A stretch of 64,000 nt of DNA. Source: Bugula neritina. Its lineage: Eukaryota; Animalia; Bryozoa. Position 1 is the first letter of the stretch, and every line of letters begins with the position of its first letter. The stretch lies in contig OZ037768.1 of the NCBI GenBank assembly GCA_964035545.1, positions 15,483,875-15,547,874 of the forward strand, given 5' to 3'. The notes beneath the pieces were generated by a model. That model was not told where the DNA came from. It saw only the letters and a list, made by a program, of their open reading frames with translations, and searched no databases. Both the position numbers and the translations under genes were made by a program. Positions 10,232 to 37,800 of this stretch are shown piece by piece.

Positions 10232-10439
10232 TATTGAATATAGTGAAAACCAGTTTACTTATATTACTACTTTGGAGTTATGTTCTTTATATAATATTAT
10301 AGATTCCATATTACATCATTTGTAACCTGTTTCCTTTTTACCCATAATCCCTCTCTTTTGTTCCTGTGTCTCCATTAAAATAAATTGCTGAACTATATTG
10401 CTAAACTGAATAATCTATTTACATCTAAGTAAATCAACA
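10232..10439 (+). repeat. 5' LTR of copia element (208 bp)
   Basis: TATTGAATAT...AAATCAACA, a direct repeat of 14517-14724 with one visible mismatch (A10261 vs G14546). Confidence 0.97.
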
Positions 10440-10453
10440 GGTTATGGGCCCAG
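10440..10453 (+). promoter_or_regulatory. Primer binding site GGTTATGGGCCCAG (internal half-tRNAiMet type, as in Drosophila copia)
   Basis: Immediately follows the CA of the 5' LTR. Matches the known copia-type PBS that pairs with the anticodon-stem region of initiator tRNA-Met. Confidence 0.9.
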
Positions 10454-10456
10454 TTG

Positions 10457-14392: not shown

Positions 14393-14507
14393 TTAAACCT
14401 TGTATCATCTTAAATATGTTGTTACCTACTTTTCTTTATTTCTTCTGTATTTAGTTTAGTTTTTGTTTGGATTGTTTTTTATTTTTCATTTATGTCATAA
14501 CTAAACT

Positions 14508-14516
14508 ATGTGGGAG
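14508..14516 (+). promoter_or_regulatory. Short polypurine-tract-like sequence (ATGTGGGAG)
   Basis: Purine-rich stretch directly abutting the 3' LTR, after a T-rich 3' UTR. Confidence 0.6.
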
Positions 14517-14724
14517 TATTGAATATAGTGAAAACCAGTTTACTTGTATTACTACTTTGGAGTTATGTTCTTTATATAATATTATAGATTCCATATTACA
14601 TCATTTGTAACCTGTTTCCTTTTTACCCATAATCCCTCTCTTTTGTTCCTGTGTCTCCATTAAAATAAATTGCTGAACTATATTGCTAAACTGAATAATC
14701 TATTTACATCTAAGTAAATCAACA
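14517..14724 (+). repeat. 3' LTR of copia element (208 bp)
   Basis: Direct repeat of 10232-10439, followed by the TSD AAGTT. Confidence 0.97.
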
Positions 14725-17700
14725 AAGTTCTGATCCGGGCCCAATAGTGCCAAAGCTAAAACAAGTGTGCTCAACAGTGCAAAAACAGGCTAAAACATGC
14801 CTGAATGTGTTAAATTGAGCCAATTGTGCTAATAGTACCTATTAGTGCCCAGAAGTTCTAAAACGTGCCCAATAGTGCTAATAGTAGAACTAGTGTGCTC
14901 AACAGTGCCCAAATGTACTAAATTGAGCCAAATATGGTTATAGTACCAATAAGTGCCCAGAGGTTCTGAGACGTGCCCAATAGTGCTAATAGTAGAACTG
15001 CTGTGCTTAACAGTGCCCAAATGTGCTAAAACATGCCAAGATGTTCTAAATTGAGCTAAACATGCTTGCAGTACCTATTAGTGCATAGAAATTCTGAAAC
15101 GTGCCGTATAGTGCTAAAACTAGAACAAGTGTGCTCAACAGTGCCCAAATGTGCTAAAACATGCCCAAATGTGCTAAAACATGCCCGAATATACTAACTT
15201 GAGCCAAATGAGCTAATAGTACCAATAAATGCCCAGAAGGTCTGAAACGTGCCCAATAGCGCTAATAGTAGAACTACTGTGCTTAGCAGTGCCCAAATCT
15301 CCTAAAAGATGCCAAAACGTGCGAAATTGAGCCAAATAGGCTAATAGTACCAATAAGTGCCCAGAGGTTCTGACACGTGCCCAATAGTGCTAATAGTAGA
15401 ACTGCTGTGCTTAACAGTGCCCAAAAGTGCTAAAACATTCCCAAATGGGCTAAAACATGCCCAAATTTACTAAATTGAGCCAAACATGCTAATAGTACCT
15501 ATTTGTGCCCAGAAGTTCTGAACATGCCCAGTAGTGCTAAAACTAGAACAAGTGTGCTCAACAGTGCCCAATTGGGCTAAAACGTGCCCAAACGTACTAA
15601 ATTGAGCAAAATATGATAATAGTACCAATAAGTGCTCAGAGATTCTGAAATGTGCATAAGAGTGCTGATAGTAGAACTACTGTGCTTAACAGTGCCCAAA
15701 TCTGTTAAAACATTCCCAAATGGGCTAAAACATGCCCAAATTTACTAAATTGAGCCAAAAATGCTAATAGTACTTATTTGTGCCCCGAAGTTCCGAACGT
15801 GCCCAGTAGTGCTAAAACTAGAACAAGTGTGCTCAACAGTGCCCAATTGGGCTAAAACATGCCCAAATGTACTAAATTGAGCCAAATATGGTTATAGTAC
15901 CAATAAGTGCCCAGAGGTTCTGAGACGTGCCCAATAGTGCTAATAGTAGAACTGCTGTGCTTAACAGTGCCCAAATGTGCTAAAACATTCCCAAATGTAC
16001 TAAATTGAGCCAAATATGCTAATAGTACCAATAAGTGCCCAGAGGTTCTGAAACGTGCCCAATAGTGCTAAAACCAGAGCAAGTGTGCTCAACAGTGCCC
16101 AGATAAGCTAACACATGCCCAAATGTACTAAATTGAGTGAAATATGCTAATAGTACCAATAAGTGCCCAGAGGTTCTGAAATGTGCATAAGAGTGCTGAT
16201 AGTAGAACTAGTGTGCTTAACAGTGCCCAAATCTGCTACAACATTCTCAAATGGGCTAAAACATGCCCAAATGTACTAAATTGAGCCAAATATGTTAATA
16301 GTACCAATAAGTGCCCAGAGGTTCTGAAACGTGGCCAATAGTGCCAATAGTAGTTCTAGTGTGCTTAAAGATGCCCAAATGTCCTAAAATATGCCAAAAT
16401 GTGCTAAATTGAGCCAAACATGCTTACAGTACCTATTAGTGCCCAGAATGTCTGAAACTAGCCGTATAATGCTAAAACTAAAACAAGTGTTCTCAACAGT
16501 GCCCAAATGTGCTAAAACATGCCCAAATGTGCTAAAACATGCCCGAATACACTGACTTGAGCCGATTGAGCTAACAGTAGCAATAAATGCCCAGAGGTTC
16601 TGAAACGTGCCCAATAGCGCTATAGTAGAACAAGTGTGCTCAACAGTGCCCAAATGGGCTAAAACATGCCCAAATGTACTAAATTGAGCCAAATATGCTA
16701 ATAGTACCAATAAATGCCCAGAGGTTTTCAAACGTGCCCAATAGTGCTGATATAGAACTAGTGTGATTAACAGGGCCCAAATGTGCTCAAACGTGCCCAA
16801 ATGTGCTAAAATGGGCCGAGTATACTAATCGCACCAACAACCGCCAAGAGGTTCTGAAACGTGCCCAATAGTGCTAATAGTAGAACTGGTGTGCTTAACA
16901 GTGCCCAAATCTGTTAAAACATTCCCAAATGGGCTAAAACATGCCCAAATGTACTAAATTGAGCCAAACATGCTAATAGTACCAATTGGTGCCCAGAGGT
17001 TCTGAAACGTGTCCAATAGTGCTAATAGTAAAACTAGTGTGCCTAAAAGTCCCCAAATGTCCTAAAACATGCCAAAACGTGCGAAATTGAGCCAAACATG
17101 CTAATAGTACCAATTAGTGCCCAGAGGTTCTGACACGTGCCCAATAGTGCTAATAGTAGAACTGCTGTGCTTAACAGTGCCCAAATGTGCTAAAACATTC
17201 CCAAATGTGCTAAAACATGCCTAAATTTACTAAATTGAGCCAAATATGCTAATAGTACTTATTTGTGCCCAGAAGTTCTGAACGTGCCCAGTAGTGCTAA
17301 AACTAGAACAAGTGTGCTCAACAGTGCCCAATTGGGCTAAAACATGCCCAAATGTACTAAATTGAGCCAAACATGCTAATAGTACCAATAGGTGCCCAGA
17401 GGTTCTGAAACGTGTCCAATAGTGCTAATAGTAAAACTAGTGTGCCTAAAAGTCCCCAAATGTCCTAAAACATGCCAAAACGTGCGAAATTGAGCCAAAC
17501 ATGCTAATAGTACCAATTAGTGCCCAGAGGTTCTGACACGTGCCCAATAGTGCTAATAGTAGAACTGCTGTGCTTAACAGTGCCCAAATGTGCTAAAACA
17601 TTCCCAAATGTGCTAAAACATGCCTAAATTTACTAAATTGAGCCAAATATGCTAATAGTACTTATTTGTGCCCAGAAGTTCTGAACGTGCCCAGTAGTGC

Positions 17701-18957
17701 TAAAACTAGAACAAGTGTGCTCAACAGTGCCCAATTGGGCTAAAACATGCCCAAATGTACTAAATTGAGCCAAATATGGTTATAGTACCAATAAGTGCCC
17801 AGAGGTTCTGAGACGTGCCCAATAGTGCTAAAAGTAGAACTGCTGTGCTTAACAGTGCCCAAATGTGCTAAAACATGCCAAGATGTTCTAAATTGAGCTA
17901 AACATGCTTGCAGTACCTATTAGTGCATAGAAATTCTGAAACGTGCCGTATAGTGCTAAAACTAGAACAAGTGTGCCCAACAGTGCCCAAATGTGCTAAA
18001 ACATGCCCAAATGTGCTAAAACATGCCCGAAAATACTAACTTGAGCCAAATGAGCTAATAGTACCAATAAATGCCCAGAGGGTCTGAAACGTGCCCAATA
18101 GCGCTAATAGTAGAACTACTGTGCTTAGCAGTGCCCAAATCTCCTAAAAGATGCCAAAACGTGCGAAATTAAGCCAAATAAGCTAATAGTACCAATAAGT
18201 GCCCAGAAGTTCTGACACGTGCCCAATAGTGCTAATAGTAGAACTGCTGTGCTTAACGGTGCCCAAAAGTGCTAAAACATTCCCAAATGGCCTAAAACAT
18301 GCCCAAATTTACTAAATTGAGCCAAACCTGCTAATAGTACCTATTTGTGCCCAGAAGTTCTGAACATGCCCAGTAGTGCTAAAACTAGAACAAGTGTGCT
18401 CAACAGTGCCCAATTGGGCTAAAACGTGCCCAAACGTACTAAATTGAGCAAAATATGATAATAGTACCAATAAGTGCCCAGAGATTCTGAAATGTGCATA
18501 AGAGTGCTGATAGTAGAACTACTGTGCTTAACAGTGCCCAAATCTGTTAAAACATTCCCAAATGGGCTAAAACATGCCCAAATTTACTCAATTGAGCCAA
18601 ATATGCTAATAGTACTTATTTGTGCCCTGAAGTTCTGAACGTGCCCAGTAGTGCTAAAACTAGAACAAGTGTGCTCAACAGTGCCCAATTGGGGTAAAAC
18701 ATGCCCAAATGTACTAAATTGAGCCAAATATGATTATAGTACCAATAAGTGCCCAGAGGTTCTGAGACGTGCCCAATAGTGCTAATAGTAGAACTGCTGT
18801 GCTTAACAGTGCCCAAATGTGCTAAAACATTCCCAAATGTACTAAATTGAGCCAAATATGCTAATAGTACCAATAAGTGCCCAGAGGTTCTGAAACGTGC
18901 CCAATAGTGCTAAAACCAGAGCAAGTGTGCTCAACAGTGCCCAGATTAGCTAACACA
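14725..18957. repeat. Tandem satellite (short tail of subfamily A, then subfamily B from ~14920)
   Basis: Same monomer framework. B-type variants (ATATGGTTATAG, ATGCTTGCAGTAC, AATCGCACCAACAACCGCCAAG) appear from ~14930. Confidence 0.97.
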
Positions 18958-18979
18958 CACAGCATAGTTAAGGTCATCC
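18958..18979 (+). repeat. Left TIR CACAGC-ATAG-TTAAGGTCATCC
   Basis: 19/22 match to the reverse complement of 34833-34854. Confidence 0.92.
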
Positions 18980-20243
18980 CCAGCATAAATTCATCTCATA
19001 ATCTAGTCTCAGTTCCTTTATGCTATTGCTCTGTGGGCGGCATGCGTATTGCCTACTTGTCATACTTTAGCATGAGGTTGAACAATTACCAGCAAACCAT
19101 TGCGCTAGTTAGGGCTGCACCTGTTTCCATTACAACCATCACAACAATCTATTGAGCAAGTATGCAAGTGGCAAGCCTCAGCATTACCTTATTATTATTA
19201 CGGGAGGTCATTGGTTCATTGTATATGCAATATACTTTATGCACAATGGAAGATGATTTTCATACAGTTACTTTTTCAACCAGCAATCTACAACTATTTC
19301 ACATTATGAAAGCAAGCTATATAGATACATCAATGCTAATTCATTATTTATCCATACAGCTATTTTAATGAAGTTATTATCAACAGCTATTGAAATGACA
19401 ATGCAGCCATCATCTAAGTAACTTTTATTGCTGCTCTACTAATAGATATTTTAAAAGATAAGAATTTCTCAAAGCATAATGTATTCTGGACTGTACTAAA
19501 AATATATCTGTTTAATGCCATTGACAATCTCAGAGCCAAAATTACCTTCATCAACAAAATCTTTCTCTAGTTGCACCTACTACAAGCTAAAAGTGACTTC
19601 TCGGTGTTGAATATTACTATCAGTTACATAATTTACGAGTCCACCCAATTGCTTAGCATAGTAAAGAGACTGGCATAGGTCAGATAGTCATGTGTGTGCG
19701 AGATTTTGTTGGTAGCTGTAAAGGGCAGATATGCAGTATTTTGAGTGACTGCTTTGAGTTTAGATGGTTTGGGTAACGGATTTGATTGCTGCAAGTTTCC
19801 CACAAAGCTAGTACTATTGCGGTCTCATTGATACTAGTATAATAAGCAGTAATCAGCACTCATTGAAGGGAGTTGGAACTATATAAAAAGGTTAGAAAAG
19901 TAGCCTGTGCTTCAAATAGTTTATTTGCTTTCTGATGCATACAGTCTAAACTCTAAAAGGTTCTATCAAGCTTACATGGCTTCGAGCTGAATGTCCAAAA
20001 ATTGGCCATGAGCTATATCTTGTTGCTCAACACTGGAAAATTTATGAGTTTGCAGCCATGCAGTGAACAATCAGGCTCCTTTGTACTTAGTTTGTTATCA
20101 TAGCTAGGCTTTTATATACTAACCCAGAGTTAAAATTATCAAATATTTTATGTTTTTTAAACTTGCCATCTAATAGGAAATGCTAGTTAAGCTAGACATC
20201 CGAGTTTGGCTGATGCATCGATGCTATGGTTGCCAGAGTGAAA

Positions 20244-20295
20244 CAGCTGGGGGAATCCCCCCCTAGTGGGAATTCCCCCAGGTTGGGAACCACTG
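20244..20295. mobile_element. Tiny hAT (Charlie-like) MITE relic / GC-rich hairpin
   Basis: Ends in CCCCCAGGTTGGGAACCACTG, the reverse complement of the hAT-type terminus CAGTGGTTCCCAACCTGGGGG. Contains the palindrome CTGGGGGAAT...ATTCCCCCAG. No TSD found. Confidence 0.5.
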
Positions 20296-21472
20296 GTCCA
20301 GTTAGACTAACTGACATCATGCTTTCCTGAGTGAAACACCCAAGATGAAAAGTTTTAATCTTAGTTAGGCAAGAATTGAGATTTTGAAAAAAGCCTCCTT
20401 AAAATTATTACCATGTCGTTTAAGAACTTATACCATAGGTATAGAGAAAAGTATGTAAGTTTAATGCAGGTTTACTGATAATTATATGAACAGAGGCAGC
20501 GATCAACATTACATTTATGATGTCATTGCTAGTTATTCGCCAGAGTTGCTGCTATAGTTGGAAGAAGTAAAAACTCCAGCATGCTAACTTATACTGCTGT
20601 AAATGAAGAACTCAACAGATTCCATTGTGGCATGCATATTTCATTTTCTTGGGTCTACAGAAACCTTCAATGGTTCATTCACCCAATGGCCTTCATAGCT
20701 GTCAGAAAATGTGAACAGAATAACTAGGAGCTATATACTGCTGGTTATATACCACACATTATGTAACATAATTTAGGCAGTATTCATGGGGCTAAAACAT
20801 CTATAGGCTGTATTTATTGTAGGACTTATGACATTCAGGCAGTCTATTACTATATTAAATTATCTTGCCTGCTAAAACTTAGCACTGAATGGTAAAAGTA
20901 ATAGGCCGAAGCTTCTAAGTTATGATTTTTTTACTTTTAATAGGAGGCTCAACCAAATTTTTTAATTACCAACTATGTTGCACCAGCTATATCTAAAATC
21001 AGCTAGGCAAGGCAATTACAAATCCTGTTCACAGCTTCAAGCCATTTGCTAATCAGTAACCAACCATTTTAGCTACTTACTGCCATACTGGCCTCAAATT
21101 GTTGGTTACACATTTGGTGCATCTTTTCATTGCTTCTGCTTTATCAAAAAAATATGGAGCTTTCACCAAAGTGAAAAACCTATTGTTAAACAAAATACTT
21201 TCTGGCTGGATATGTATGTATTTGCTGTTAGATTTTGATTGTACTTAACTGAGTACTATGAACAAACAGTATCTACACCCGCAGCAATAGTTGGTTAAAT
21301 ATAGAAATGATTCATAATTTCAGTTATCCAGATTCTTAACACATGTAAGTTATGTGATTGGGTAGCTTCTATAAAGAAATTGGAGCCTAAATTTAAATAA
21401 GGAGCCAATTTTAGCAAAATCTGGTTATATAGAGCCTTGCCATTGCATTCATTCATTAGAGAACATTCAGTC

Positions 21473-24007
21473 ATGGCAAAAGGCAGCACTTACAATAATC
21501 AGTGTGGTTTTCTAACCAACATCTTTTTTGTACATTTCAAATCTGGGACTGACGTAGAAAGATTTCAGCAAGATTACAACATACTAAACAAATTATCAAT
21601 AAAGGATTACAATCGAAACAGAAAGCAAACGAGAAGTTACTTAATGAAAAATGCCAGTTATTTCAATAAGGATGGAGAGGCAAAAAAGAGGTTTATGTCC
21701 TACTTTACACTAGTCAACTTTAAAAAACTTTCACCTGCGGCTAGATCACGGCATAGTCTTATGGATTGCTTTGAGTGTTCTATCAAACACAAAGCTGAGT
21801 GGCAGCTCAAAATTGGGAATGTGGACATTGCAAAGCCTGCTACATCTGAAACCGCAGTCAGGACTCTGAAAGCTGTTCTTGAAAAGACTCCAGAACAAAT
21901 AACAGGAAAGCTGGTCAAAGAATTTGTAACGAATGTCATTAAACCAGCAGAAAAAATTATAAATGAAACAACACATTCTTGCAAACTATTGAAGCCTAAA
22001 AGCAACGTCAAGAGGAAATCTATTGCTGCCAAAGACGTTCCAAAAAAAGTTCGGAGACAAATTATTAAAGCTGCCAATGAAAGCATCTCAAACCAAATTA
22101 TTAACAATGACTTTTTGGCTCTATATTCTACTAAACAGTCTCATTCAGAGTGGGATTTACAGAGGAAGCGCCAATTTGGTGAATTTAGAACCAACAGAAA
22201 AAAACCTCATATAGGAAGTTTTAGGAACTACACATTTGATTTAGAAGTGGTTGAAGCTACATTATCAGTTGGCAACACAACAAATTGGACACAGCTTAGC
22301 AAATCTGCTAATTTGAAAAACAAGCATGGTGAAGTTCCAAAAAATGCAGGCCAGGTAAGAAAAAGAGGTAGCTAACGTTAATTATAATTGGATTTGTAAT
22401 AATGATTTATTGAGCTATATAATATTCTGTAAAAGAAATAAACATGATAATTTTGAACAAGTACGTTTGCTAATAGTCAAATATAATTTCTAAAATAAAC
22501 AGTTGTTCACATCAGGTTATGAAAGAATTGGTGAAAAGAAATATGAATCGAACGATAGAAAACCAACCAAGAAAGCGAATATCATGGATAAACTATAAAT
22601 CTTTAGCACTTAATGTTAAGAGAAAATCATCAGCTGCACAATTGAAGTTACAAAGGAAAAAAATGATAGACACAGGAGAGGTTGATGTAGGGGAGCTGAT
22701 AGTTCCGGTGGAATATCATGCACTCAAAGTGCACCCAGATGGCACATTGGTGAGTTTGACCTGAGCAGCTCAGTGCAAATACTATGACTGTATATAATTA
22801 CATACAACAATATTGTAATCCTGTTGTATTTTCAAGGTAAAGATTAGAAAGGAAGTATCCGGAAGAAAATTCTCACTTCAGAAGATTAGAGAACATCATT
22901 TACATCAAATGATGACTATGAAACTGTTGAGAAACATTAATCCGAGCAGTATGCCGCTGACTGAGGTTCTTGATTTCCTTGATCGAAATGGTACCTTGAA
23001 TCTCCTGTTGTTTTACTGATAGTCTTGTAATACCTACAGAAAAAAAATCAAATTTAGTGAGATGTATAGCAAAAATACAAAGCTGTATTACCAGTTTAAT
23101 CTTGATAGAAGTATTACCTTATAATGAGAGAAAATCATAGTAAAAATATATTATAGTTGACATTATATTCTCAACCTTAATTATCAAAGTTCATTAACTT
23201 TTTGATAAATGATGGAGTGCAATAATATGTGCCTTGTGCAGACAGCACAACCTCATTGATTAGTAACTCTAACAAATTGTATACTTGAGAAAATATTCAA
23301 GCATACACTGGTTCAGCTTGTGATGGTGTTATTATAAGTATAGCAGTGGGAAGCAATGAAGATCCTAGAGAGAGGCTACGCCAGGCTACTCAAACTCGCT
23401 ATATGGCACTGTGGCACGATCACTCTGATATTGCCGGTAAGTAGCATAAACTTACACACGTTCCTAAACTTTTACTTTATGCTGAATTCCAAACTAAAAC
23501 TTTTTATTTATCATAAATCAAATTACTATTATTGCAGGTAAAAGTCATTATCTGTTTATGGTGTGGTTCTTGTATGATCAGTGCACATATTACACGGATG
23601 AAGAATATGTGAAGCTCAACCAAACTGTAAGTTGTGTAATGTGCACAGTTAATGTCATTGTACAAGCTGTGCAAAAATACTATTTGTGTAACCCAAAACT
23701 TGTACAATTAATCCTTTTTTCACCAGTATTACATATACTTCCAATGCCTGTTTCTAACTCAGGAAAAGATAACTAGCATTCAATCAAGAGTTGAGGCACC
23801 ATATATCTACATACTGGCCAGATCTAGCTCATCAGTTAATGATCAGCTGCTTTACGTTCCAACTCGATTGGAAGACATGAAGATGTTAAAGCAACCAATT
23901 ACTTTGACAGATGGAAGAGACTTTTATGATGTGTTAAGGTTCTTTTCAGGGGACAACCCTGCAAGGCAGCTAGAAGCAGGACAACAGTGCGGAGGTATAT
24001 TCGGACA

Positions 24008-24100
<93 letters not shown>

Positions 24101-27100
24101 CAGTAATAGCATATAATTGTGCATAATCGCTTCTACTGACATATTTTATTTTTTTTGAAAATATCATTATTTCAGGAATGTTTCCATGCATATGCGGAGT
24201 GCAGGATGAACATTTTGGGAATGAAAGTTCACATAATAAAGGTGGCAGCTTCCACAACTTAGATTCAAGAGTCCAGCACCTCAACAAAACCAAAACATGG
24301 AAATCGGGCTTTCATAGTGGAAATATTGCTGTTTTCCAAACTCTCAGGGTATGTTGTATATGTGCAACTATATAAATAAGCTTGAAAGTAACTTTTTAGA
24401 AAGAATGTACATTTATTAATTTATTTATTGTATTTAAGACTGAAGAACTCAAAGCAGAACTCCTCAGGAGAAATGTAGCTTTCTCAACTACAGACCAACC
24501 GGCACAACTAAAGAAGCTACTAAATGTCAATCTCAAAGGTAGGCAAAGCTGATGAACAACTAATTATTCATGTGAGCTTCTCTGGTGGAAGAATTTGGCT
24601 ATAAAGGCTAAAGGGTACATTGAATGTGTGTATGTGCAAGAGTGTAGGCTGCCTATATAAAGAGGGTAAATATCATTTGTAACTTACCAACAGGTATCAA
24701 GAGGCCTCCAGCATTACTTTGCTCAAGAATGGAAAATCCAGTGGATATTTCGCAGTATGAAATAGCACTGATGGAGCCATTACATGACTTCAAAAATGTA
24801 ATTAATAGAGTTTTGAAAGAGCTTCCTCATTCTACAGAAGAAAAAGAATTAAAAGTTATGCTATCAAATCTAATTTCTGACATAGAAGGTAAACATTATC
24901 ATTTTGATATAACTGATATTGATGTAAAAGTTTTATAGAAAACAAAATGTATAAATAAAATTTAAAATATTGTGGCATGCCAATATAGTTTATAGAAACC
25001 TAATGGATAAATTCTAAGAATTTATCTAAGAATTGATGTTAGAGCAGTTATGCAATGACAATACAAATTTCCAAATTATATTAGTAGTTCAATGTAGAGA
25101 AAATTATAAATGCAGTTGATAATTGAATCTACACAATGCTGAAAAACCAAGATGTTAGGTAAGAGCTTCTGCCTTTATACAACTGTAACTACCACACTGC
25201 ATGAGTTCTGCATTTTATTACAGCACAAAACCGGGAAATGAAAGGTACAGAGAGTAGAATTAACCTAGTAAAAGTGGCTGTAATGCTAAAACAATTTGAG
25301 TTTTCTCCCGATGGCCGGACAATGTATACAATGCTCCTTTCGCTAATTGAGCTACAAAAATTGGCATACGCTCTTGATACCCAAAGGACACAGAAGAACA
25401 TTTTAAGGGCATACAATCATAGTTTTTTATTTGCCATGAGGTGTATACAGTTATTTAAAGAACCAAAGACATGCAGCAAACGGGCAATGTTTCAGGCCGG
25501 TCCCTGGTAGCAGAAAGTGCTGAAAGGCATTTCCACAAGCTAAGGTACAAGCTGTCATTTGACGGCATATATTTAGGATACTAATATAGTTTGTGAAAAA
25601 TAATTGAATAGTTCAACTTCAATGAAAATAAAAAATGTTTAGTCTCCCAACAACTAATACAACTTCCTAAATTAATTTATTTTAGAGAAATTGCTTTGCG
25701 ATGCTCCAGCAGAGAAGCAAATGATATTATTGCCAAAGCAATGTTCAGGGCAGCTGTGGAGAAAAGAGCTGACAGCACATCAGAGAGCAGCATTGCAGTG
25801 CAAGAGAAACAGATAAACCAGAAAATAAGCAGTTCATCAATTACAAAATCTTGTTGTGGATTATATTTGGGACAAAATACTGTTATCTCAACCAAGTAAG
25901 TTTTAATTATAGCTTGGGGTAGGCCTACTTAACATTTCATATGTAAATAACTATATAGCTACAGCAATAATATTGTGACCTCACCAGCAGTTTGTAATGA
26001 TAAAGCATATTTATTGTAAGAATGCTTTGATCTCTAGATTTCTAACAACACATAGAACTGCAGCTCTGCACCACTTCAAACGAATAGCAGACTACCTAGA
26101 ATTGGGAGAGGGTACGTGGTACACAGTGCGAGAAGGAGCTATAGAGTTCCACGATGGCGATAGCTCTCCCAGTAGCCATGATGCAGGACCTGCATTGGCT
26201 CATTTTCGGTAAATAATATTATTCAAATAGTCAACTGCTTTTATTTTAAGAGACTGATACCTTTTAAAATTTTCAAAGATGTCAGATAAATATATCATTA
26301 ATATTGTTTTTCTGCTAGCTGTTTCTATTTATAAATGCCGCTCCCACGATATGAAAGACATTAACAGCATGTTGGATAATAGCTGGGAATTCTGTGTTCG
26401 AAATAAAAGTTCCTTAAAAATCCCACTTCTCATAGACGAGCAAAGATGTAGTGCAAAAATATTAGGTGGGTAATATTTTAAACATAAGCTTCAATATTCT
26501 TTTGCCTTCTAATATTATTTGCAATACTCTCATAAGGCAGCAATGATGAAAGTTTTGAAAGATCACTCATATTTTGCTAATATAGTTTTTTTATAAACTA
26601 TTTAAATATCAAGGTCAGTTTTAAAGTCTATTATCATTAATATTTTTTTAAAATTACATCTAGAACAACCAGCAACAAGCCAGATCAAACCTAGTATTGG
26701 CATCATAATGAAAGAGTTAGAAGACAACAGAAACCCTGCGCACACTGCATCTATTCTGCAACAGGAAACACTCCAACTGGTTAAGGAAGATAGTCTGTCA
26801 GCTTCTTTTGTGTGTGCTGTCCCCTTACTAACAAAAAGTAAGTACTGCAAAAGTAAATGTAGCTGGACTTTGTCATTATAATTATTTAGTTGCTGCAAGT
26901 CTAAAAATTATTAAAATCAATATCTCAAAAAGCTTAACTCAGTATTACGTTTCATAGTTAGATCACAACTATTCAACAACATTTAATACCACTCCGACTG
27001 CCATGCAAATTGATCTTTCAAATGCATGATATAGACGTAGACTAATTAATGTAAATGAGCAAGTATTGACTTGATCAAAAACTTACAAATTAGCCCCAAT

Positions 27101-27877
27101 AGTCATGTCACACTATAATATAAGTATTGGACAGGACTGAGTTTTGCACAACTTGATTTTGTTCATGTATACTGAGAATTGGCATAGCTGAATGTTGACT
27201 TGATCTGAATTTCTGTGACTATATCCAATTTATATTTATTAAAAAATCTTACCTTTAGATTTGACTCCCAAAAGCATGTTAACACCCAGTACAAGCAACA
27301 AAATGCCGGTTAAAAGCTGTAACAAGTCAGTTTCAGGTGAGTCAAGAAAGTCAACGAAGAATCTCACAACTGATCAACTTTAAATCAACAAAATTATTTG
27401 TTGCTAATAAATAATAAATAATTTATGCATGATGCTACATCCTTCGTGGACTCGGCGGTATTTTAGCCAAAAATATTAATTGTTCAACTACAGTATATTA
27501 GACTGATCGAACTGTTCAACTGCTATTGTGAGTTGTTGCAGATGAGCCTAAACAATTGCTAAAGACAAATGTATATAATTTGTATTTTAGATACTATACG
27601 AAGTATATGGCCATATAGCACAAGTATATTGGAAGACTTTATCAAAGCTAAAAGAGATTGCAAAGACAAAACGATACTTGCTCACAAAATCAAGTGGAGA
27701 GAAGTGTGCAAGAAAATTAGACCATTTTTAACGCAACTATTAGAGAAACTGATAGAAAAGAACAAAGCTGAAACAATGGAAAAGCTTAAAACAAAAGGAC
27801 TATTTGCTCTGGAAGCGGACCCACAAAATTCTTATAAGATAAAATGCATAAATTACTGGTTAAAGCAAATTAGCTAA
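21473..27877 (+). pseudogene. Multi-exon DDE transposase of RAG1/Transib/CMC type with SAP-like insert (frameshifted copy)
   Basis: Hand-built GT-AG model with consistent phases: 21473-22354, 22516-22749, 22837-22990, ~23347-23436, 23538-23626, 23763-23994, 24176-24348, 24439-24538, 24694-24888, 25224-25544, 25686-25895, 26038-26208. Less certain exons follow at ~26341-26466, ~26664-26838, ~27259-27336 and 27590-27877. Motifs in order: LWHDHS (D1), RFFSGDNPARQLEAGQQCGGMFPCICG (D2 plus Cys pair), TEELKAELLRR (SAP-like), EPLHD, AESAERHF (E). Frameshift near 25491. Confidence 0.75.
24011..24098. repeat. (TA)44 microsatellite in intron 6 of the transposase gene
   Basis: Perfect TA run between the donor after 23994 and the acceptor before 24176. 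Confidence 0.98.
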
Positions 27878-28389
27878 AAATAATTTAGAACAGCAATTTA
27901 TGTTGCTGATTGCAAGTGCGGAGCTGTTTTTAATAAGTTTGACCATCTCCATTATCTCTCATCATTTCCATGCATGGAAATTTTATTTTTTTAACGAAGT
28001 GTTATAGAATAACTATAAGTTATTACTTAATAGCTACTGCAGTTATCATAGACAAACTGATGGAGCTCAAATTTAAATTACGTCATGTTAAGTTTAACTC
28101 TATATTGGGATTTATTATTAAAGTTTTAGGGTGCGCCCGTAAAGTTTTATTTATTTTTTTCACATTATAATTGATATTCATATTGTTATAATTTTATAAA
28201 TATAAGGATAAAGTTATGACAATGAATGTAAAACAATTGCATATAAAAGAATGTGGTGCATACTGGACATCATGATTATGATTATCTAAATAATATAAAT
28301 ATGCATCATTGTAACTGCATGTGTAATCATAATGTGTACAACTACAAGTGCAAAATGAAAATAGTGGGCCGAATAATTTATTGATGGGT

Positions 28390-28535
28390 CAATAGTATTA
28401 CTATTAGTGTTAACTATTAGTATTATTACTTATTGGTTATTAGAATTACTATTAATGTTAGACTTTGAACTAGAAGTTAGTAGTAGTTACTGTTAGTGTT
28501 ACTGTTAAAGTCTCTAACTATTATTATTACTGTAT
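28390..28535. repeat. Low-complexity (TATTAC/TATTAG/TGTTAC-like) stretch
   Basis: Degenerate short-period repeats of tatta/tgtta/tagta. Confidence 0.55.
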
Positions 28536-29337
28536 TTAAATTTTAGCAGTTGAACTCAACAAAACTTTGAACCACAAAAACAAAAAATTAAATTAAAATT
28601 TGAAAAGCACAAAATACGATAAAACTTGCATACCAGCAAACATAAGTCTTAGTCTTAGTGAGTGAGTCTTTCCTCCGGTGAGCCAGTTTGATTTTCACAT
28701 TGTTTAAAAGATAAGGGTTTTTTTTAATATTTTTCACAACTAAAATAATTTGATTTTCATAGTGAATGAATATATATTACTTACCAGTAAAAACCGTTCT
28801 TGTCTTGGCATATTATGTATGCTAGATATCATTAATCCAGGTCAAGTCTAGCAAAGTCTCATAGCGCCGTACAATTGCAGTAGCTGTACTAGATTTCCTG
28901 CATCGTAGTAAACCGCAGCTAGAAAGTTGATCACGCAGCACAAGCATGCACAGTTTTAAAGGGGGGTTGTTGGATTTAACATTTTCAAAAGATAAGGGGA
29001 TCTTGCAGTATAAGAAAATTATCTATCAATTCATAATACATCTAAAAACTTAATATGTCTTTAATAAAATAAAATATTCTCTCACCAAGATAGCAAAGAA
29101 AAATTGTTATACATAAATTTTAATCAAATTCCCCCACCCCTGATATAATACTATATTTAGGCTACCCACTTGAAGGCTGCATGCTGGACAACCAGTCACC
29201 TTCGTGATCTTGATTCAAAATAGTATTATAAAAATAAACTAATTGTGTATACTGCAAGCCGAAAGCATAAATTGCTCAAATAACTTAGAAAGCAAGCTGG
29301 CAATAACAAATGCTACTGAATACTATTACATACTAAT

Positions 29338-30219
29338 AGACCATGTAAAACTCAGCCAATCAGCGAAGTGTACCAGGTCAATGTCTTACTATTGTAACTG
29401 ATATAAAATTCTGCAAGTTCAATTGCAAAATGCATGCTTCTAAAAGCTAGTTGTGCAACTTTTTTTTCATGCATTATTTAATTTCATATCTTAAATTGAT
29501 GACTCTTGAAATGATTTTTTAAAATGTCTAAATTAAGTGTTTATAAAACGCAAATAAAAATTGCATGTCTAGAAAAATGACCTGGTACACTTTTGCAACT
29601 TAAGGCCAATTATTACATAACTGCCAGCTTAGTAGTTATTTGTTGTTGCAGCTTGAATGGGTTATTGTTTAGCATTGGAAGCTTGCAGTAAACATCTGTG
29701 AATTTGGTACATGACTTCGATTGGCTGGTTTTTGAATGGCCCTTTAGTATATGCATCTGGATGGCTGGGTAGTGTGGACTCCGCCTACATCTAGCTAATG
29801 TACAGTAGCCAATCCACAGTAGTATTACAAAATTTCTGTTTAACAAATGAAATATTCTGGTCATTTGTTTTGTACTTTACAATAGTAAATATTCTATTCA
29901 ACTAGAATTTTATTGTATGTAAGCCATGGGAACTACTAAGAGGTTAAATCAACCACCCATGCTGGTAATATTGTTGCTAGCAGTAATAGCAAGTCCACAC
30001 AGTATAAATATACACATAAGCTATTATGTGCAGCTTATAAATGCTGAAATGACCCCATTTCTTACTTACAATTTGAAAAAAATTGTATTACATATTCTGC
30101 CACTTCTGCACCAGGAATTTGTTTTCCTTTTAAATTTTGAAAATAGTAGTCAGTTTCTGCAGCAGTCAACTGCATCCACAATAAACAACGTAAGCTTTCA
30201 AATAAACTATAAGTATATG
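29338..30219. repeat. Left long inverted arm of nested element
   Basis: Reverse complement of ~31956-32827, near-identical distally and more diverged in the inner ~200 bp. Confidence 0.92.
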
Positions 30220-30422
30220 AAATATTAAGTGTGGAAACAATGTAATTTAGTTCTTGCTATGATGAAAAATTACAAGAATATTATATTATAAAAGCTAGAT
30301 ATAGATTTCTATAAAATGGCACAGGTAAAAATAACACATTTTTACTTCAAATTTTAAATTTCATCAGTCACCAATGGTGGCTGTAGATTACAGAGAGCAT
30401 AGCAGACTATCATAATCATAAG

Positions 30423-31968
30423 GATGGTCAGCCCACTGAGCAAAATCCAACTCCAACCTTTCATTTGGGTTACCAACGCACTAAAGCATATAATGTAAGA
30501 CGAACAAAAAACAGTGGTTTTAATGAAACATGTGAAGGAAGCAAACAGAAAACGTTATCAACAGAGTCAGCTGATATAGAGCAACAGAACTCATCTGACA
30601 GCCATCCTCATAGTCAGGCTTCATCAGAAGTAACTGAGTTACCAGAATCATCAACTACTCAGAAAAAAAGATCTGCACATTCTATTGATAGACGAAAATC
30701 AAAAGTTGGAAGAAAAGGCTCAAAAAGATCCACGTTTAAACAAAAAGCAGCTATTGAAAAAGTAAAAGTTTTTAAAACTTTCATCACTACAGATGAGCAA
30801 ACTAAATTCTATACTGAAATACCTACACGTTCTCTATACTATTTTTTAGCAAGGTGAAAATTATGATTTTCTTATTGCAAAGATAGACTATGGTTTATTA
30901 CAAATAAACAATGCAAGTCTCACTATGCTAAAATTTCTACATTGATTAAATTTGATGTGTATTAAAACTGTCATTTTAATTAAATTTGTTGCATTGTGAG
31001 TGTATCATTCATACATTTTTTATTAAAGATGTTGTTTTATGTAAGATATTCATAAATACCACAGTGGACATCTGTATGCTTTGACTTATTTAGTTTAGGG
31101 TTTTATTTAAACAAGCAGCAGTATTTTATTTGTGGACAAATTGACTCACTTTCTCTAGGAAAAGTAAATTGTTTTGACTTAAATTTTCCTTGGTTATTTT
31201 AAAGCTTATCAAAAGTGGCCTCCTAATCTAATTTTTAGCTGAAACTAACTCAGTGTTTAAAACTAAAATGGTTTACACTTGTTACTAGTTTCACTTATTC
31301 ACAAACATTATTAAATGCTATTCTAGAAATAATATGGGTTTGAATTAGTTATAGTATAATTATAAAATGAAGTAATAATTGTTTGTCCACAGTATTTGTT
31401 TAAACTCATAACTTCATTCAAAGCATGTATTCATACAACTAGCTTACCATGTACTGTTACAGTATTATGTAACACATGTTGACACACATTACATTCTGTT
31501 TGGATGGTGATATATTGGGTCAAGCCTTCAGCTAGCAGTTCTTGAACTTCATAGTTGTTGCAAAATATAACTGAAGCTACTTACCAGAGGGTAAAAACTG
31601 CTGAATGAATACAAACTAAGCACAAAATTTATTTAGCACATACATTATAATTTGAATCATAATTTAATTTTCATTCTTTATTTTCTATATTTAGATTTAT
31701 ATGTCCGAAGATGAAAGTTCTTATTCTCCAAAAAAAGTTAACAAGACAAGATGAACTTTTATTGGCTTTGATGAAGCTGCGTCAAGGTTTACAGTTTCAA
31801 ATACTTGCTGGCCTTTTTTATATCTCTAGATTGCTAGCAAGCAAAACCTTCAAAAACACATTAGATATTTTAGCAAGAGAACTGAACAATCTAATAGTTT
31901 TTCCAACAAGAGAGAAGCTGAACATCCCTCTGAGCTTTCAAAGCCAATATGCTACCATATATTTATAG
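30423..31968 (+). pseudogene. Truncated THAP-HTH transposase remnant (ISL2EU/Harbinger type), no intact DDE domain
   Basis: DGQPTEQNPTPTFHLGY resembles a THAP C-terminal tail, followed by DEQTKFYTEIP. An in-frame phase-2 intron (30854-31694) joins to KKLTRQDELLLALMKLRQGLQFQILAGLFYISRLLASKTF...LIVFPTRE (HTH_Tnp_4-like). Stop at 31966-31968, at the start of the right arm. Confidence 0.78.
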
Positions 31969-32827
31969 TTTATTTGAAAGCTTACGTTGTGGATGTTGAC
32001 TGCTATAGAAACTGACTACTATTTTCAAAATTTAAAAGGAAAACAAGTTCCTGGTGCAGAAGTGGCAGAATATGTAATACAATTTTTTTCAAGTTGAAAG
32101 TAAGAAATGGGGTCATTTCAGCATTCATAAGCTGCACATACTAGCTTATGTGTATATTTATACTGTGTGGACTTGCTATTACTGCTAGCAACAATATTAC
32201 CAGCATGGGTGGTTGATTTAACCTCTTAGTAGTTCCCATGGCTTACATACAATAAAATTCTAGTTGAATAGAATATTTACTATTGTAAAGTACAAAACAA
32301 ATGACCAGAATATTTCATTTGTTAAACAGAAATTTTGTAATACTACTGTGGATTGGCTACTGTACATTAGCTAGATGTAGGCGGAGTCCACACTACCCAG
32401 CCATCCAGATGCATATACTAAAGGGCCATTCAAAAACCAGCCAATCGAAGTCATGTACCAAATTCACAGATGTTTACTGCAAGCTTCCAATGCTAAACAA
32501 TAACCCATTCAAGCTGCAACAACAAATAACTACTAAGCTGGCAGTTATGTAATAATTGGCCTTAAGTTGCAAAAGTGTACCAGGTCATTTTTCTAGACAT
32601 GCAATTTTTATTTGCGTTTTATAAACACTTAATTTAGACATTTTAAAAAATCATTTCAAGAGTCATCAATTTAAGATATGAAATTAAATAATGCATGAAA
32701 AAAAAGTTGCACAACTAGCTTTTAGAAGCATGCATTTTGCAATTGAACTTGCAGAATTTTATATCAGTTACAATGGTAAGACATTGACCTGGTACACTTC
32801 GCTGATTGGCTGAGTTTTACATGGTCT
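31956..32827. repeat. Right long inverted arm of nested element
   Basis: Reverse complement of 29338-~30219. Confidence 0.92.
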
Positions 32828-34832
32828 ATTGATGCAGTCAAATGAAAATATGTTAGGCTATGTTATGTTAAGGTAAAATTCAGGCCTTAGCTGCATGCAG
32901 TAAATAGATAAATTCTAGCAGAGAACGTACTATCTCTACTTATTTCAAGTTCATATCTACAGTATCACCGCATGCAGATTAGTTTCTGCCAAGTTTCCTC
33001 AACACTGAAGGATCTCATGACTGCAGCTGAGTTAGCAATATTATGCTTGTTGACTAGTTAGAGAGTTTTTTATGACACATTATTTTCATCCTGCAAACTC
33101 TGCCACATTGAAAGGGTTTAATATGACACTGATATTCTTGATGTAAGTGCCTAATTTACTTATCAGTAACAAGTGATTTAGTTGGCCTTCAAGCTCAAAT
33201 CATGAGCTCATTTCAGCTAAAAATAGCTGCACCTTGTCACTGCATATATGAATGGCTGCATGGCCACTGCCTCAGCCATCAACTTCTATTGCAAAACTGC
33301 TACGTGCAATATTTATTCATCAATCAGAAACTATACCTATTTTAAGCTACCAGAGTTTTGTTACTATATAAAGAGTTGCCTACTTATAGGTGCAAAAATA
33401 AAAAAGCCTCAATACCTAGTCTAAATTCTTTAATTTTTTAAGAGATTCTAATTTGAGAACAGGTTGATATTTTATGCTGCATCTCACTGCCTATAATAGG
33501 TCCAATAATTATAGGAAACATATAGGGTTTAATTTCTCAATATCCTCATCACTACACGTACCTCATACTTGGTATACTCATGAAACTGGTAATACGATTT
33601 TTATCAAAATTTGACTATATTTTTAAAAATAAAGTTATACAATTACTATTCAATTAGTTAAGAATTTCCTCCAACAACTTTTGTAGAAGCGGAGGTTTTT
33701 TAAAACTTTAAATTAGCAATGCAATAAGCTTGGTTATAAATCTATTATTAGTATAATTTATATTACCTTACAGAACAACAAATTTGCTTTTAAATCGCGC
33801 ACAAAAGCTATAAAACTTGGTGGCTACTACATCTCACTAGCATTATAAGGTGCTTAGGTTTTTAAGCTGCATAAACTATAATTGCTAAACTGTTTTGTGC
33901 TGAAAATGTATAGGCTAAAGAGTATACACTTGCACTCAGCTAGCTTGGAAGCTCTGCAGTAGAATAATGAAATTTTTGTCTCGCTTTGAAATGTTTCTGA
34001 TGTTGCGTTGGGACACTTTGGCTCAGAGGTGTGAAGCTGAAACTCTCAAAAAATATTATTAGATCAGAAACTGATATTTCAAATATATTTTGTTTGATTT
34101 GTGTCTCTTATGTGTGGTTCTACAGACTTCAAAAACTGCTTCATAACTTTATACAACTAAAATCTAAAATCGGGGTATAGCTAGACTACACATTTTACAG
34201 CCTCGCAGCTGTAGGCAGTACAGCAACTTTGCAACCACCGAGATTTACTACCCTACAATATTTAGTAACCAGTCTCGTACTATGTAACTGGTTTAGCACA
34301 GAGATGAACTATAACCCTTTGGTTTAGCGCGCAAACAACATGAATCATAGGTCGCGTGAGCTCCCTGTAATCATTATGATAGCTAGCAGCGCAGCGCAGC
34401 TCTACTGTGTTCAGCCAAGCATGCAGACTAAGGGGAAGCAAAATTTCTAATAAAATCAGTGTATAAATTACATGTTTACACTTATTCTATTGAAGCTATG
34501 CAGAAAATTTGAAAAGGTTCCAATAGACAAATATCTTATCACTCCATAACTCAGTTTTTGAAAAAATATATCAAATAGCAATTGAGTTATATTTCGGGCA
34601 CTGAGACCATGTTTTTTTGAGCAAAAATGGGTAAAATCTGGTAGTTTTTCGGGCATAAAAGTACAACAGATAAGACAAATGAAAGTTTTAAAAAAGGTTC
34701 CAATAGAGCAGCAAGAGATATACAACATAGTTTTTGAATTTTGTTTCTAGACTCAAAATTATTCAAGTTATGAGTTGGGCACTGTTTCATATATGATTAT
34801 AATGGAGCAATGAAATTACTGATTCAGTAGAA

Positions 34833-34854
34833 GGATGACCTTAATCAAGCTGTG
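34833..34854 (-). repeat. Right TIR (read inward: CACAGC-TTGA-TTAAGGTCATCC)
   Basis: GGATGACCTTAATCAAGCTGTG, followed by TSD CA (34855-34856) and resumption of satellite. Confidence 0.92.
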
Positions 34855-37800
34855 CATGCCCAAATGTACTAAATTGAGCGAAATATGCTAATAGTACCAA
34901 TAAGTGCCCAGAGGTTCTGAAATGTGCATAAGAGTGCTGATAGTAGAACTAGTGTGCTTAACAGTGCCCAAATCTGCTACAACATTCTCAAATGGGCTAA
35001 AACATGCCAAAATGTACTAAATTGAGCCAAATATGTTAATAGTACCAATAAGTGCCCAGAGGTTCTGAAACGTGGCCAATAGTGCCAATAGTAGTTCTAG
35101 TCTGCTTAAAGATGCCCAAATGTCCTAAAATATGCCAAAATGTGCTAAATTGAGCCAAACATGCTTACAGTACCTATTAGTGCCCAGAATCTCTGAAACT
35201 AGCCGTATAATGCTAAAACTAAAACAAGCGTTCTCAACAGTACCCAAATGTGCTAAAACATGCCCAAATGTGCTAAAACATGCCCGAATACACTGACTTG
35301 AGCCGATTGAGCTAACAGTGGCAATAAATGCCCAGAGGTTCTGAAACGTGCCCAATAGCGCTAGTAGTAGAACAAGTGTGCTCAACAGTGCCCAAATGGG
35401 CTGAAACATGCCCAAATGTACTAAATTGAGCCAAATATGCTAATAGTACCAATAAATGCCCAGAGGTTTTCAAACGTGCCCAATAGTGCTGATATAGAAC
35501 TAGTGTGCTTAACAGCGCCCAAATGTGCTCAAACGTGCCCAAATGTGCTAAAATGTGCCGAATATACTAATCGCACCAACAACCGCCAAGAAGTTCTAAA
35601 ACGTGCCCAATAGTGCTAATAGTAGAACTGGTGTGCTTAACAGTGCCCTAATCTGTTAAAACATTCCCAAATGGGCTAAAACATGCCCAAATGTACTAAA
35701 TTGAGCCAAACATGCTAATAGTACCAATAGGTGCCCAGAGGTTCTGAAACGTGCCCAATAGTGCTCATAGTAAAACTAGTGTGCCTAAAAGTCCCCAAAT
35801 GTCCTAAAACATGCCAAAACGTGCGAAATTGAGCCAAACATGCTAATAGTACCAAATAGTGCCCAGAGGTTCTGACACGTGCCCAATAGTGCTAATAGTA
35901 GAACTGCTAAGCTTAACAGTGCCCAAAGGTGCTAAAACATGCCCAAATGTGCTAAAACATACCCCAATACACTGACTTGAACCAATTGGGCAAAAAGTAC
36001 CAATTAATGCCCATAGGTTCTCAAACGTGCCCCATAGTGCTGATATAGAACTAGTGTGCTTAACAGCGCCCAAATGTGCTCAAACGTGCCCAAATGTGCT
36101 AAAATGTGCCGAATATACTAATCGCACCAACAACCGCCAAGAAGTTCTAAAACGTGCCCAATAGTGCTAATAGTAGAACTGGTGTGCTTAACAGTGCCCT
36201 AATCTGTTAAAACATTCCCAAATGGGCTAAAACATGCCCAAATGTACTAAATTGAGCCAAACATGCTAATAGTACGAATAGGTGCCCAGAGGTTCTGAAA
36301 CGTGCCCAATAGTGCTCATAGTAAAACTAGTGTGCTTAAAAGTCCCCAAATGTCCTAAAACATGCAAAAACGTGCGAAATTGAGCCAAACATGCTAATAG
36401 TACCAATAAGTGCCCAGAGGTTCTGACAAGTGCCCAATAGTGCTAATAGTAGAACTGCTGTGCTTAACAGTGCCCAAATGTGCTAAAACATTCCCAAATG
36501 TACTAAATTGAGCCAAATATGCTAATAGTACCAATAAGTGCCCAGAGGTTCTGAAACGTGCCCAATAGTGCTAAAACCAGAGCAAGTGTGCTCAACAGTG
36601 CCCAGATTAGCTAACACATGCCCAAATGTACTAAATTGAGCGAAATATGCTAATAGTACCAATAAGTGCCCAGAGGTTCTGAAATGTGCCTAAGAGCGCT
36701 GATAGTAGAACTAGTGTGCTTAACAGTGCCCAAATCTGCTACAACATTCTCAAATGGGCTAAAACATGCCCAAATGTACTAAATTGAGCCAAATCTGTTA
36801 ATAGTACCAATAAGTGCCTAGAGGTTCTGAAACGTGGCCAATAGTGCCAATAGTAGTTCTAGTCTTCTTAAAGATGCCCAAATGTCCTAAAATATGCCAA
36901 AATGTGCTAAATTGAGCAAAACATGCTTACAGTACCTATTAGTGCCCAGAATCTCTGAAACTAGCCGTATAATGCTAAAACTAAAACAAGTGTTCTCAAC
37001 AGTGCCCAAATGTGCTAAAACATGCCCAAATGTGCTAAAACATGCCCAAATACACTGACTTGAGCCGATTGAGCTAACAGTAGCAATAAATGCCCAGAGG
37101 TTCTGAAACGTGCCCAATAGCGCTATAGTAGAACAAGTGTGCTCAACAGTGCCCAATTGGGATAAAACGTGCCCAAACGTACTAAATTGCGCAAAATATG
37201 ATAATAGTACCAATAAGTGCCCAGAGATTCTGAAATGTGCATAAGAGTGCTGATAGTAGAACTACTGTGCTTAACAGTGCCCAAATCTGTTAAAACATTC
37301 CCAAATAGGCTAAAACATGCCCAAATTTACTAAATTGAGCCAAATATGCTAATAGTACTTATTTGTGCCCCGAAGTTCTGAACGTGCCCAGTAGTGCTAA
37401 AACTAGAACAAGTGTGCTCAACAGTGCCCAATTGGGCTAAAACATGCCCAAATGTACTAAATTGAGCCAAATATGGTTATAGTACCAATAAGTGCCCAGA
37501 GGTTCTGAGAAGTGCCCAATAGTGCTAATAGTAGAACTGCTGTGCTTAACAGTGCCCAAATGTGCTAAAACATTCCCAAATGTACTAAATTGAGCCAAAT
37601 ATGCTAATAGTACCAATAAGTGCCCAGAGGTTCTGAAACGTGCCCAATAGTGCTAAAACCAGAGCAAGTGTGCTCAACAGTGCCAAGATTAACTAACACA
37701 TGCCCAAATGTACTAAATTGAGCGAAATATGCTAATAGTACCAATAAGTGCCCAGAGGTTCTGAAATGTGCATAAGAGTGCTGATAGTAGAACTAGTGTG

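Follow-up and report, generated by a model that had tools for sequence, protein, structure and literature searches.

The cut-and-paste DNA transposons of the CMCT clade, which unites the CACTA/EnSpm, Mirage, Chapaev and Transib elements with RAG1, are characterised by CA...TG tips, target-site duplications (TSDs) of 2-5 bp, and transposases with C(2)C and H(3-4)H motifs that lie between the second catalytic Asp and the catalytic Glu (PMC12730594). Among them, Chapaev elements combine CAC...GTG tips and a 3-4-bp TSD with the C(2)C, LH and H(4)H motifs (PMC4079192), and a 2-bp TSD is known both for Mirage and for ESTA, a fungal CMCT lineage in which it is specific to TA (PMC12730594). The length of the TSD also varies within Transib, for relatives of which 3-bp and TA duplications were reported in a 2026 preprint. 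Here we analyse an insert of 15,897 bp in the genome of the bryozoan Bugula neritina (18958-34854 of a 64,000-bp window, which is the whole stretch analysed: contig OZ037768.1, positions 15,483,875-15,547,874, assembly GCA_964035545.1). The insert is a DNA transposon that interrupts a satellite array and carries a spliced gene of an uncharacterised protein family. With a probability of about 0.88, it is a copy, of autonomous type but now defective, of a cut-and-paste transposon with a transposase of the CMCT clade.

The satellite, consisting of 128/148-bp units of 20-bp sub-repeats, fills nearly the whole window. The element starts with a 22-bp terminal inverted repeat (TIR) CACAGCATAGTTAAGGTCATCC (18958-18979, + strand), present at the start of every copy read, and ends with the TIR at 34833-34854 (- strand), the reverse complement of which is CACAGCTTGATTAAGGTCATCC. 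The two TIRs are identical at 19 of 22 bases, and since the three mismatches between the 5' and the 3' end are the same in all copies, they represent a fixed asymmetry of the family rather than decay. The dinucleotide CA precedes the left end (18956-18957), and the same CA follows the right end (34855-34856). Joining the flanks without the insert and with a single CA gives GCTAACACATGCCC, where the satellite has GCTAAAACATGCCC; thus, the insertion cut neatly through a single satellite monomer and duplicated 2 bp. This agrees with the first-pass annotation, made from the sequence of the window alone, in which an insert with 22-bp TIRs starting with CACAGC and a duplication of CA only was proposed to split one monomer.

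The terminal 443 bases at the left end of the element and 455 bases at its right end were used as queries against the genome (216 Mb, 321 contigs). Each query gave at least 40 matches, all of them beginning or stopping precisely at the proposed tips. Twenty complete copies and the ends of a further copy on contig C6 were read, and together with the window copy they make 22, in all of which (22/22) these ends recur and are flanked by a perfect 2-bp TSD, a match expected by chance for 1/16 of copies. The target duplication is 2 bp long without a strict target sequence, being CA, TT, TA, TT, TC, AT, AT, AT, CA, AA, GG, GA, TG, TT, AC, AA, AC, TA, TA and TA in the 20 complete copies and TT in the C6 copy. 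A pattern of the ends had 76 matches genome-wide, whereas its reversed control had none, which corresponds to about 38 copies of the family. Given these counts and the 21 further copies with the same ends and TSD length, the ends and the TSD are not due to chance. Copies lacking the proposed termini or the 2-bp TSD would have contradicted the first-pass annotation, and none of the 21 deviates.

The gene is carried by only two copies, the one in the window and the one at C6:7085149-7097590, which is 12,442 bp long and 98-99.6% identical to the window copy. The remaining copies are mostly 5.3-5.5 kb long, about 36 of them being gene-less. They have approximately 1.4 kb at the 5' side and 1.7 kb at the 3' side in common with the large element, and their central 2.4 kb is unrelated to it and contains no sizeable open reading frame (ORF). 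In blastn comparisons of 20 copies with the element, the common 5' subterminal region (18958-20405, + strand) was 72-78% identical from 18958 to about 20036-20184 and 82-89% identical over 20296-20405, and probably holds sequences required in cis; the common 3' subterminal region lies at 33150-34854 (+ strand). Just inside the 3' end, a unit of about 180 bp occurs twice in tandem (34512-34784), in short copies too (L042, 5105-5309). This is the sole tandem duplication, and no subterminal repeat arrays of the type known for plant CACTA elements were detected in the element. The short copies form two subfamilies with 91-99% identity within each. Two of them, L053 and L058, are 99.85% identical and located at different sites with different duplications, and thus the gene-less copies have moved recently. 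The window and C6 copies lie, in opposite orientations, in the same 128/148-bp satellite family, and at least eight short copies lie within another repeat of about 20 bp, which suggests that the family inserts preferentially into satellite DNA or is retained there.

Relatives of the encoded protein were searched for with single exons or with complete, naturally occurring relatives as queries. A HMMER search with one exon (24648-24935) retrieved 69 proteins among 1.84 billion, mostly exon-sized fragments, together with P0025, a protein of 910 aa. The core of P0025 in turn retrieved about 100 relatives from Mytilus, Crassostrea/Magallana, Saccostrea, Argopecten, Pinctada, Branchiostoma, Nematostella and Actinostola, all of which are annotated as "uncharacterized" or "hypothetical". 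Forty of them were used to build a family hidden Markov model (HMM), which was mapped onto the + strand of the window, and to determine the conservation of residues, numbered here according to P0025:330-910.

The family HMM revealed 13 collinear exons (21500-26428, + strand), all with GT-AG borders of canonical sequence (CAG/GTAAG, TTG/GTGAGT, CCG/GTAAGT, ttgcag/G etc.). Exon 1 (21500-22363; HMM 20-308, E 4e-27) would encode the N-terminal region with a CxxC...H motif (21767-21778), and has a GTAAG donor at about 22355; in the C6 copy, it is open and 99% identical. Exons 2-5 (22537-22755, 22849-22983, 23352-23438 and 23531-23623) match HMM positions 326-511 in order, with GT-AG borders, and contain the putative first catalytic Asp motif, WHDHSD (23412-23429), where W53 and D55 are invariant in the family. 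Exon 6 (23763-24002; HMM 512-591, E 8e-34) carries the putative second catalytic Asp motif, GDNPAR (23949-23966), of which G153, D154 and P156 (GDxPA) vary little or not at all in the family. An (AT)44 microsatellite (24010-24098), 8 bp shorter in the C6 copy, lies in the intron that follows. Exons 7 and 8 (24172-24351 and 24415-24546; HMM 588-680) encode the Cys pair CICG (24187-24198; C172 and C174 conserved in at least 90% of members) and a SAP-like helix-extension-helix insert (24415-24546), respectively. Exon 8 of the window fits the SAP part of the family HMM (E 5.5e-4), and on its own remains below the Pfam threshold; SAP domains are found in relatives.

Exon 9 (24690-24881; HMM 677-743, E 3e-18) carries the LH motif EPLHD (24774-24788), with E282 invariant and L284 and H285 conserved in at least 90% of members. 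Exon 10 (25226-25545) is broken: HMM positions 833-849 are missing, the frame changes, and the glutamate motif AESAER (25510-25527) is read in the other frame after a deletion. Exons 11-13 (25684-25824, 26030-26209 and 26327-26428) match HMM positions 868-1013 in order and correspond to the C-terminal part of the core. A further conserved, C-terminal exon (27563-27874, + strand), which has an open counterpart with 39-41% amino acid identity at a matching downstream distance in a paralogous family of six copies, brings the total to at least 14 exons. One long spliced gene with about 15 introns, as well as WHDH, a CxC pair, a SAP-like insert and an [LM]H motif, had been predicted beforehand, and the gene model bears this out. 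A locus in assembly GCA_010799875.2, which we take to be a bryozoan draft genome, aligns with 77-81% nucleotide identity in exons and introns alike; no TIR ends were found at this locus (L067), which stops at the end of its contig.

None of the 17 exon-level frames of the element matched a transposase family of Pfam; the only match besides noise was to HTH_Tnp_4, which belongs to a nested element described below. A match to Glyco_transf_56 was rejected as noise over a wrong-frame stretch. Among the 40 relatives, Pfam recognised the SAP domain alone (PF02037; 13 of 40 members, best E 1.2e-8), and no member matched any transposase model, including that of RAG1 and PF02992 of the EnSpm/CACTA enzymes. 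The comparison of the family profile with PDB sequences likewise yielded only SAP domains (1zrj, E 3e-4), so the SAP insert is real at the family level.

The order of the conserved motifs in the family is D (WHD), D (GDxPA), CxC, the SAP insert, LH, H(4)H and E, the last two being represented by H415 and H420 (at least 90% of members) and by the conserved E436, E439, R440 and F442. The AlphaFold2 model of P0025:330-910 (predicted local distance difference test 91.8, predicted template modelling score 0.92) displays a strand-strand-strand-helix-strand order, with D55 in strand 1, D154 at the end of strand 4 and E439 at the start of a helix. According to this model, the core is predicted to be an RNase H-like Asp-Asp-Glu (DDE) domain with the positions of a RAG1-like zinc module; the absence of such a fold from the prediction would have spoken against the first-pass annotation. 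In a Foldseek search against PDB, all 49 matches with E of 0.001 or less were RAG1, HzTransib or amphioxus BbRAGL, aligned over about 520 columns. VIA-align superposed model residues 1-479 on residues 545-1004 of mouse RAG1 (Z 19.1, 404 residues, root-mean-square deviation 4.0), with lower scores for HzTransib (Z 16.4), BbRAGL (15.6), the P element (12.4) and Hermes (about 7). Judging by the aligned ranges, D55, D154 and E439 would lie near D600, D708 and E962 of RAG1. Among the predicted structures of the ESM Atlas, the best named matches were Transposase_21 (CACTA/EnSpm) clusters (TM score, the template modelling score, 0.60-0.62 over 417-430 residues); an arthropod RAG1_RNase_H cluster gave 0.54 and Plavaka 0.53. 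A language-model feature search, which provides leads only, pointed in a similar direction, with RAG1 (0.90), DUF1280 of nematode clusters (0.89) and Transposase_21 (0.89). The catalytic core of RAG1/Transib/CMC type (CMC standing for CACTA, Mirage and Chapaev) that had been suggested for the element is thus supported by Foldseek, by VIA-align and by the motif order of the family.

Such a ranking could also mean that the element is a divergent Transib/RAG-like transposon and not a lineage of the CMC side. The whole catalytic core of the model superposes on those of RAG1, Transib and ProtoRAG (BbRAGL), with corresponding order of D, D and E and corresponding positions of the zinc ligands, the three are the best-matching solved structures, and the feature search places RAG1 clusters first. 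The CACAG tip equals the first five bases of the heptamer of the RAG recombination signal sequence. The length of the TSD alone does not exclude this placement, given the exceptions described in the 2026 preprint. However, no structure of a CMC transposase has been solved, so the ranking within PDB cannot separate the two possibilities, and among predicted structures the Transposase_21 models score above the arthropod RAG1_RNase_H cluster. Transib and RAG1 produce 5-bp TSDs, whereas a duplication of 2 bp was found in the family of the window copy and in those of two distant relatives (32 of 32 tabulated copies); moreover, identity to these enzymes is only about 10%, their cores lack the SAP insert, no RAG2-like partner gene was seen, and the only link found at the sequence level leads to EnSpm-type enzymes. 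A Transib/RAG-like origin is therefore regarded as improbable. PF12940, the RAG1 model of Pfam, finds nothing in the B. neritina genome, but it is silent in control genomes too.

The link to the EnSpm-type enzymes was provided by P0054, a gene model of Mytilus coruscus that joins an N-terminal half of the new family to a C-terminal half of classical EnSpm type (PF02992-like); this chimera most likely represents two adjacent or nested elements merged by the gene caller. The C-terminal half, used as a query, retrieved 254 EnSpm-type proteins, several with PF02992 or PF13960, of which 30 were aligned as an animal EnSpm set (A2). In hhalign, the family core matched A2 with a probability of 44.5% (E 2.3e-4), so that GDxPAR...C.C stands opposite CDAPAK...C..C and H(4)H opposite H(3)H, and the Glu that is invariant in A2 falls on E439. 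HMMER found a local match between the family profile and the 30-sequence set, which begins ahead of the second Asp and reaches the Cys pair (19.6 bits, E 1.8e-7). On the basis of these alignments, the family is homologous to the CMC enzymes, but far beyond the reach of the EnSpm profile.

Distant relatives of the protein are encoded by multicopy elements of their own. P0140, 31% identical to P0025, is intronless and located in five 99.9%-identical copies of a 5,070-bp element in assembly ERZ25069764, with the ends CTCAAGTGACTTAAGGACTGG and the TSDs AA, CA, TA, AA and TA. P0115, 35% identical to P0025, lies within a 12.25-kb element in assembly ERZ26692694, with the ends CTCAGGTACATTAAGGACTGGCT and the TSDs CA, CT, AA, AA and AA. 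Thus, the tips are CTCA...TGAG and the TSD is 2 bp long in all 10 copies (10/10) of these relatives' elements, and the three types of ends have in common a C-N-C-A tip and TTAAGG at positions 11-16. No clear ends were found around the Mytilus homologue P0084. Downstream of the transposase in the ERZ26692694 elements (L074-L079, 6786-19032), there is a 204-aa ORF with a Pfam match to protein kinases, identical in six copies, which may be a captured gene fragment.

In B. neritina itself, a paralogous enzyme, 48-71% identical and open in six copies, is located between paired CACAGGATAGTTAAGG ends about 11 kb apart, for example at C1:13964138-13975164. The sequence CACAGGATAGTTAAGG has 534 matches genome-wide, compared with 4 for the control, mostly as inverted pairs about 757 bp apart (C1:3444021-3444777 etc.), which points to about 260 copies of a miniature element of about 757 bp bounded by these ends.

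These relatives bear on whether the gene is the element's own transposase or a host gene, captured or domesticated, inside a non-autonomous element. The many introns are a trait of host genes, and most copies with these ends are gene-less, the gene being found in two of them. Nevertheless, the protein is predicted to have the fold of a DDE transposase, its relatives with 31-35% identity are found inside their own multicopy elements with the same TSD length and the TTAAGG box, and the 48-71% identical paralogue sits between paired ends as well; a host gene is thus a very improbable explanation. The first-pass annotation anticipated that uncharacterised animal proteins of this type would prove to be transposases of a defined mobile element, and three element families now back this view.

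The preferred reading, that of a transposon with its own transposase, includes a defect of the window copy. The family HMM skips positions 833-849 there and the frame changes at 25492, where the C6 copy (L061) has 55 extra bases bounded by GTTT microhomology. The C6 copy reads through FHCLTVH...AESAERHF, and the sequence ...MFGMPFHCLTVHLPETLRIVSGRSLVAESAERHFHKLR precedes its donor site. In the window copy, a 55-bp deletion between GTTT repeats has removed the H(4)H motif and shifted the frame, and this copy therefore cannot make an active enzyme. The H(4)H motif is consequently present in the family and in the C6 copy, and is deleted in the window copy. In the C6 copy, exons 6-13 and the equivalent of 27563-27874, like exon 1, are open, and all of them are 99-100% identical to those of the window copy.

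It is possible to propose how such a system would operate. The transposase would bind the ends, probably through the CxxC...H region near its N-terminus and, within the ends, the TTAAGG box (positions 11-16); its D-D-E site would cut at the CAC tips, and insertion would be staggered by 2 bp. For the window copy and for the non-autonomous copies, the enzyme might come in trans from an intact sister, the 12.4-kb copy on C6, or from a paralogue.

The window copy exceeds the C6 copy by 3,455 bp, and the difference in size can be seen at 29335-32830, a region bounded by an inverted repeat of 836 bp (99% complementary), which is unusually long for the ends of a Harbinger-like element. An ORF within this region matches HTH_Tnp_4 (E 1.6e-12, Pfam), and the ends of the region also occur in the short copies L043 and L052, at other positions. 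The region is a secondary PIF/Harbinger-like insertion of about 3.5 kb that is foreign to the native element, the size of which is about 12.4 kb. Hence, the length of 15.9 kb for which the element was called giant is correct for the insert as it stands, while about 3.5 kb of it belongs to the nested element.

Five points weigh against the proposed reading of the element. Splicing and expression of the gene were deduced from homology and splice signals. The fold was modelled for the relative P0025, which is about 45% identical in the exons, and not for the element's own protein. In hhalign, no alignment is obtained between WHD, the motif with the first Asp, and the DG of EnSpm-type enzymes. Instead of the C(2)C of the CMCT clade, the conserved Cys pair, although in the expected place, has the spacing CxC. 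Finally, the intactness of the C6 copy was read for only part of the gene, namely exons 1 and 6-13 and the exon equivalent to 27563-27874. Apart from the CxC spacing, the family fits the CMCT clade; consistent with it are the CACAG...CTGTG tips with the 2-bp TSD, and the H(4)H motif, represented by H415 and H420 in the family and by FHCLTVH in the C6 copy.

Among the described lineages, Chapaev, compared by its description only, resembles the new family in the CAC...GTG tips, in LH and H(4)H, in a Cys pair between the second Asp and the Glu, and in a short TSD; it differs in that the family has a TSD of 2 bp in all copies instead of 3-4 bp, CxC, the first Asp in WHDHS, and a SAP domain within the core. 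Mirage of Caenorhabditis, likewise compared by description, shares the 2-bp TSD and the clade, and DUF1280 clusters are among the neighbours in the feature search (0.89). With the EnSpm/CACTA elements (Transposase_21, PF02992), the family has in common an alignable stretch from the helix preceding the second Asp to the Cys pair, the similarity of the predicted structures (TM 0.60-0.62), a large element size and many non-autonomous derivatives. However, EnSpm-type enzymes have DG, MH and H(3)H in place of the WHD, LH and H(4)H found here, the tips of the new elements are CACAG or CTCA and not CACTA, and there is no match at the Pfam threshold. ESTA is fungal and has a TA-specific TSD, whereas the sequence of the TSD varies here.

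Whether this combination is new depends on the catalogues of repeats. The hosts of the relatives, such as oysters, mussels, amphioxus and sea anemones, have been heavily mined for repeats, which counts in favour of an already catalogued family, for example one of the animal EnSpm, Mirage or Chapaev elements of Repbase, in which case the lineage would not be new. The features of the element are also compatible with this, as the entire CMCT clade is marked by CA...TG tips and 2-5-bp TSDs (PMC12730594), Chapaev has LH and H(4)H among its signatures (PMC4079192), and the similarity to EnSpm-type enzymes is weak but real. On the other hand, none of the 40 members matches a transposase model of Pfam, all named homologues are "uncharacterized", and hhalign reaches a probability of only 44.5% against animal EnSpm; the silence of PF12940 says little here, because control genomes are silent too. 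No published description of the family was found in the searched literature, a search that did not extend to Repbase, Dfam and RepeatPeps. We consider membership in a catalogued family to have close to an even chance.

A comparable chance, again slightly short of even, may be given to the lineage being unnamed so far. The undescribed lineage suggested by the first-pass annotation thus finds no named match in Pfam, among PDB sequences or in the searched literature, and is still only a candidate. With a chance somewhat below even, the family, which occurs in bryozoans, bivalves, cephalochordates and cnidarians, may rank as a superfamily-level lineage of the CMC/Transib/RAG1 clade that has no name yet. 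It would be defined by WHD(H)S, CxC, a SAP domain in the catalytic core and a 2-bp TSD, along with ends of 21-22 bp with the C-N-C-A tip and TTAAGG at positions 11-16.

Elsewhere in the window, the satellite is interrupted a second time by a retrotransposon (10231-14725), the Ty1/copia type of which was judged by eye from the ORF sequence. It contains a single uninterrupted Gag-Pol-like ORF of 1,312 aa (10454-14392).

Through this analysis, about 100 marine animal proteins annotated as "uncharacterized" are linked to a mobile element with defined ends and TSD. If the lineage is indeed unnamed, it would form a new CMCT branch beside Plavaka, ESTA and Lanisha; if it is already in Repbase, the result is an ordinary annotation. 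The family was recently mobile, with a C6 copy that is open in the exons read and about 36 gene-less copies, and is suited to a transposition assay. With its DDE core, which resembles that of RAG1, is well modelled and includes a SAP domain, the family joins the few relatives of the V(D)J recombinase, and, if the superfamily-rank reading is true, it could help to order the steps that led from CMC-type transposases to the Transib/RAG line.

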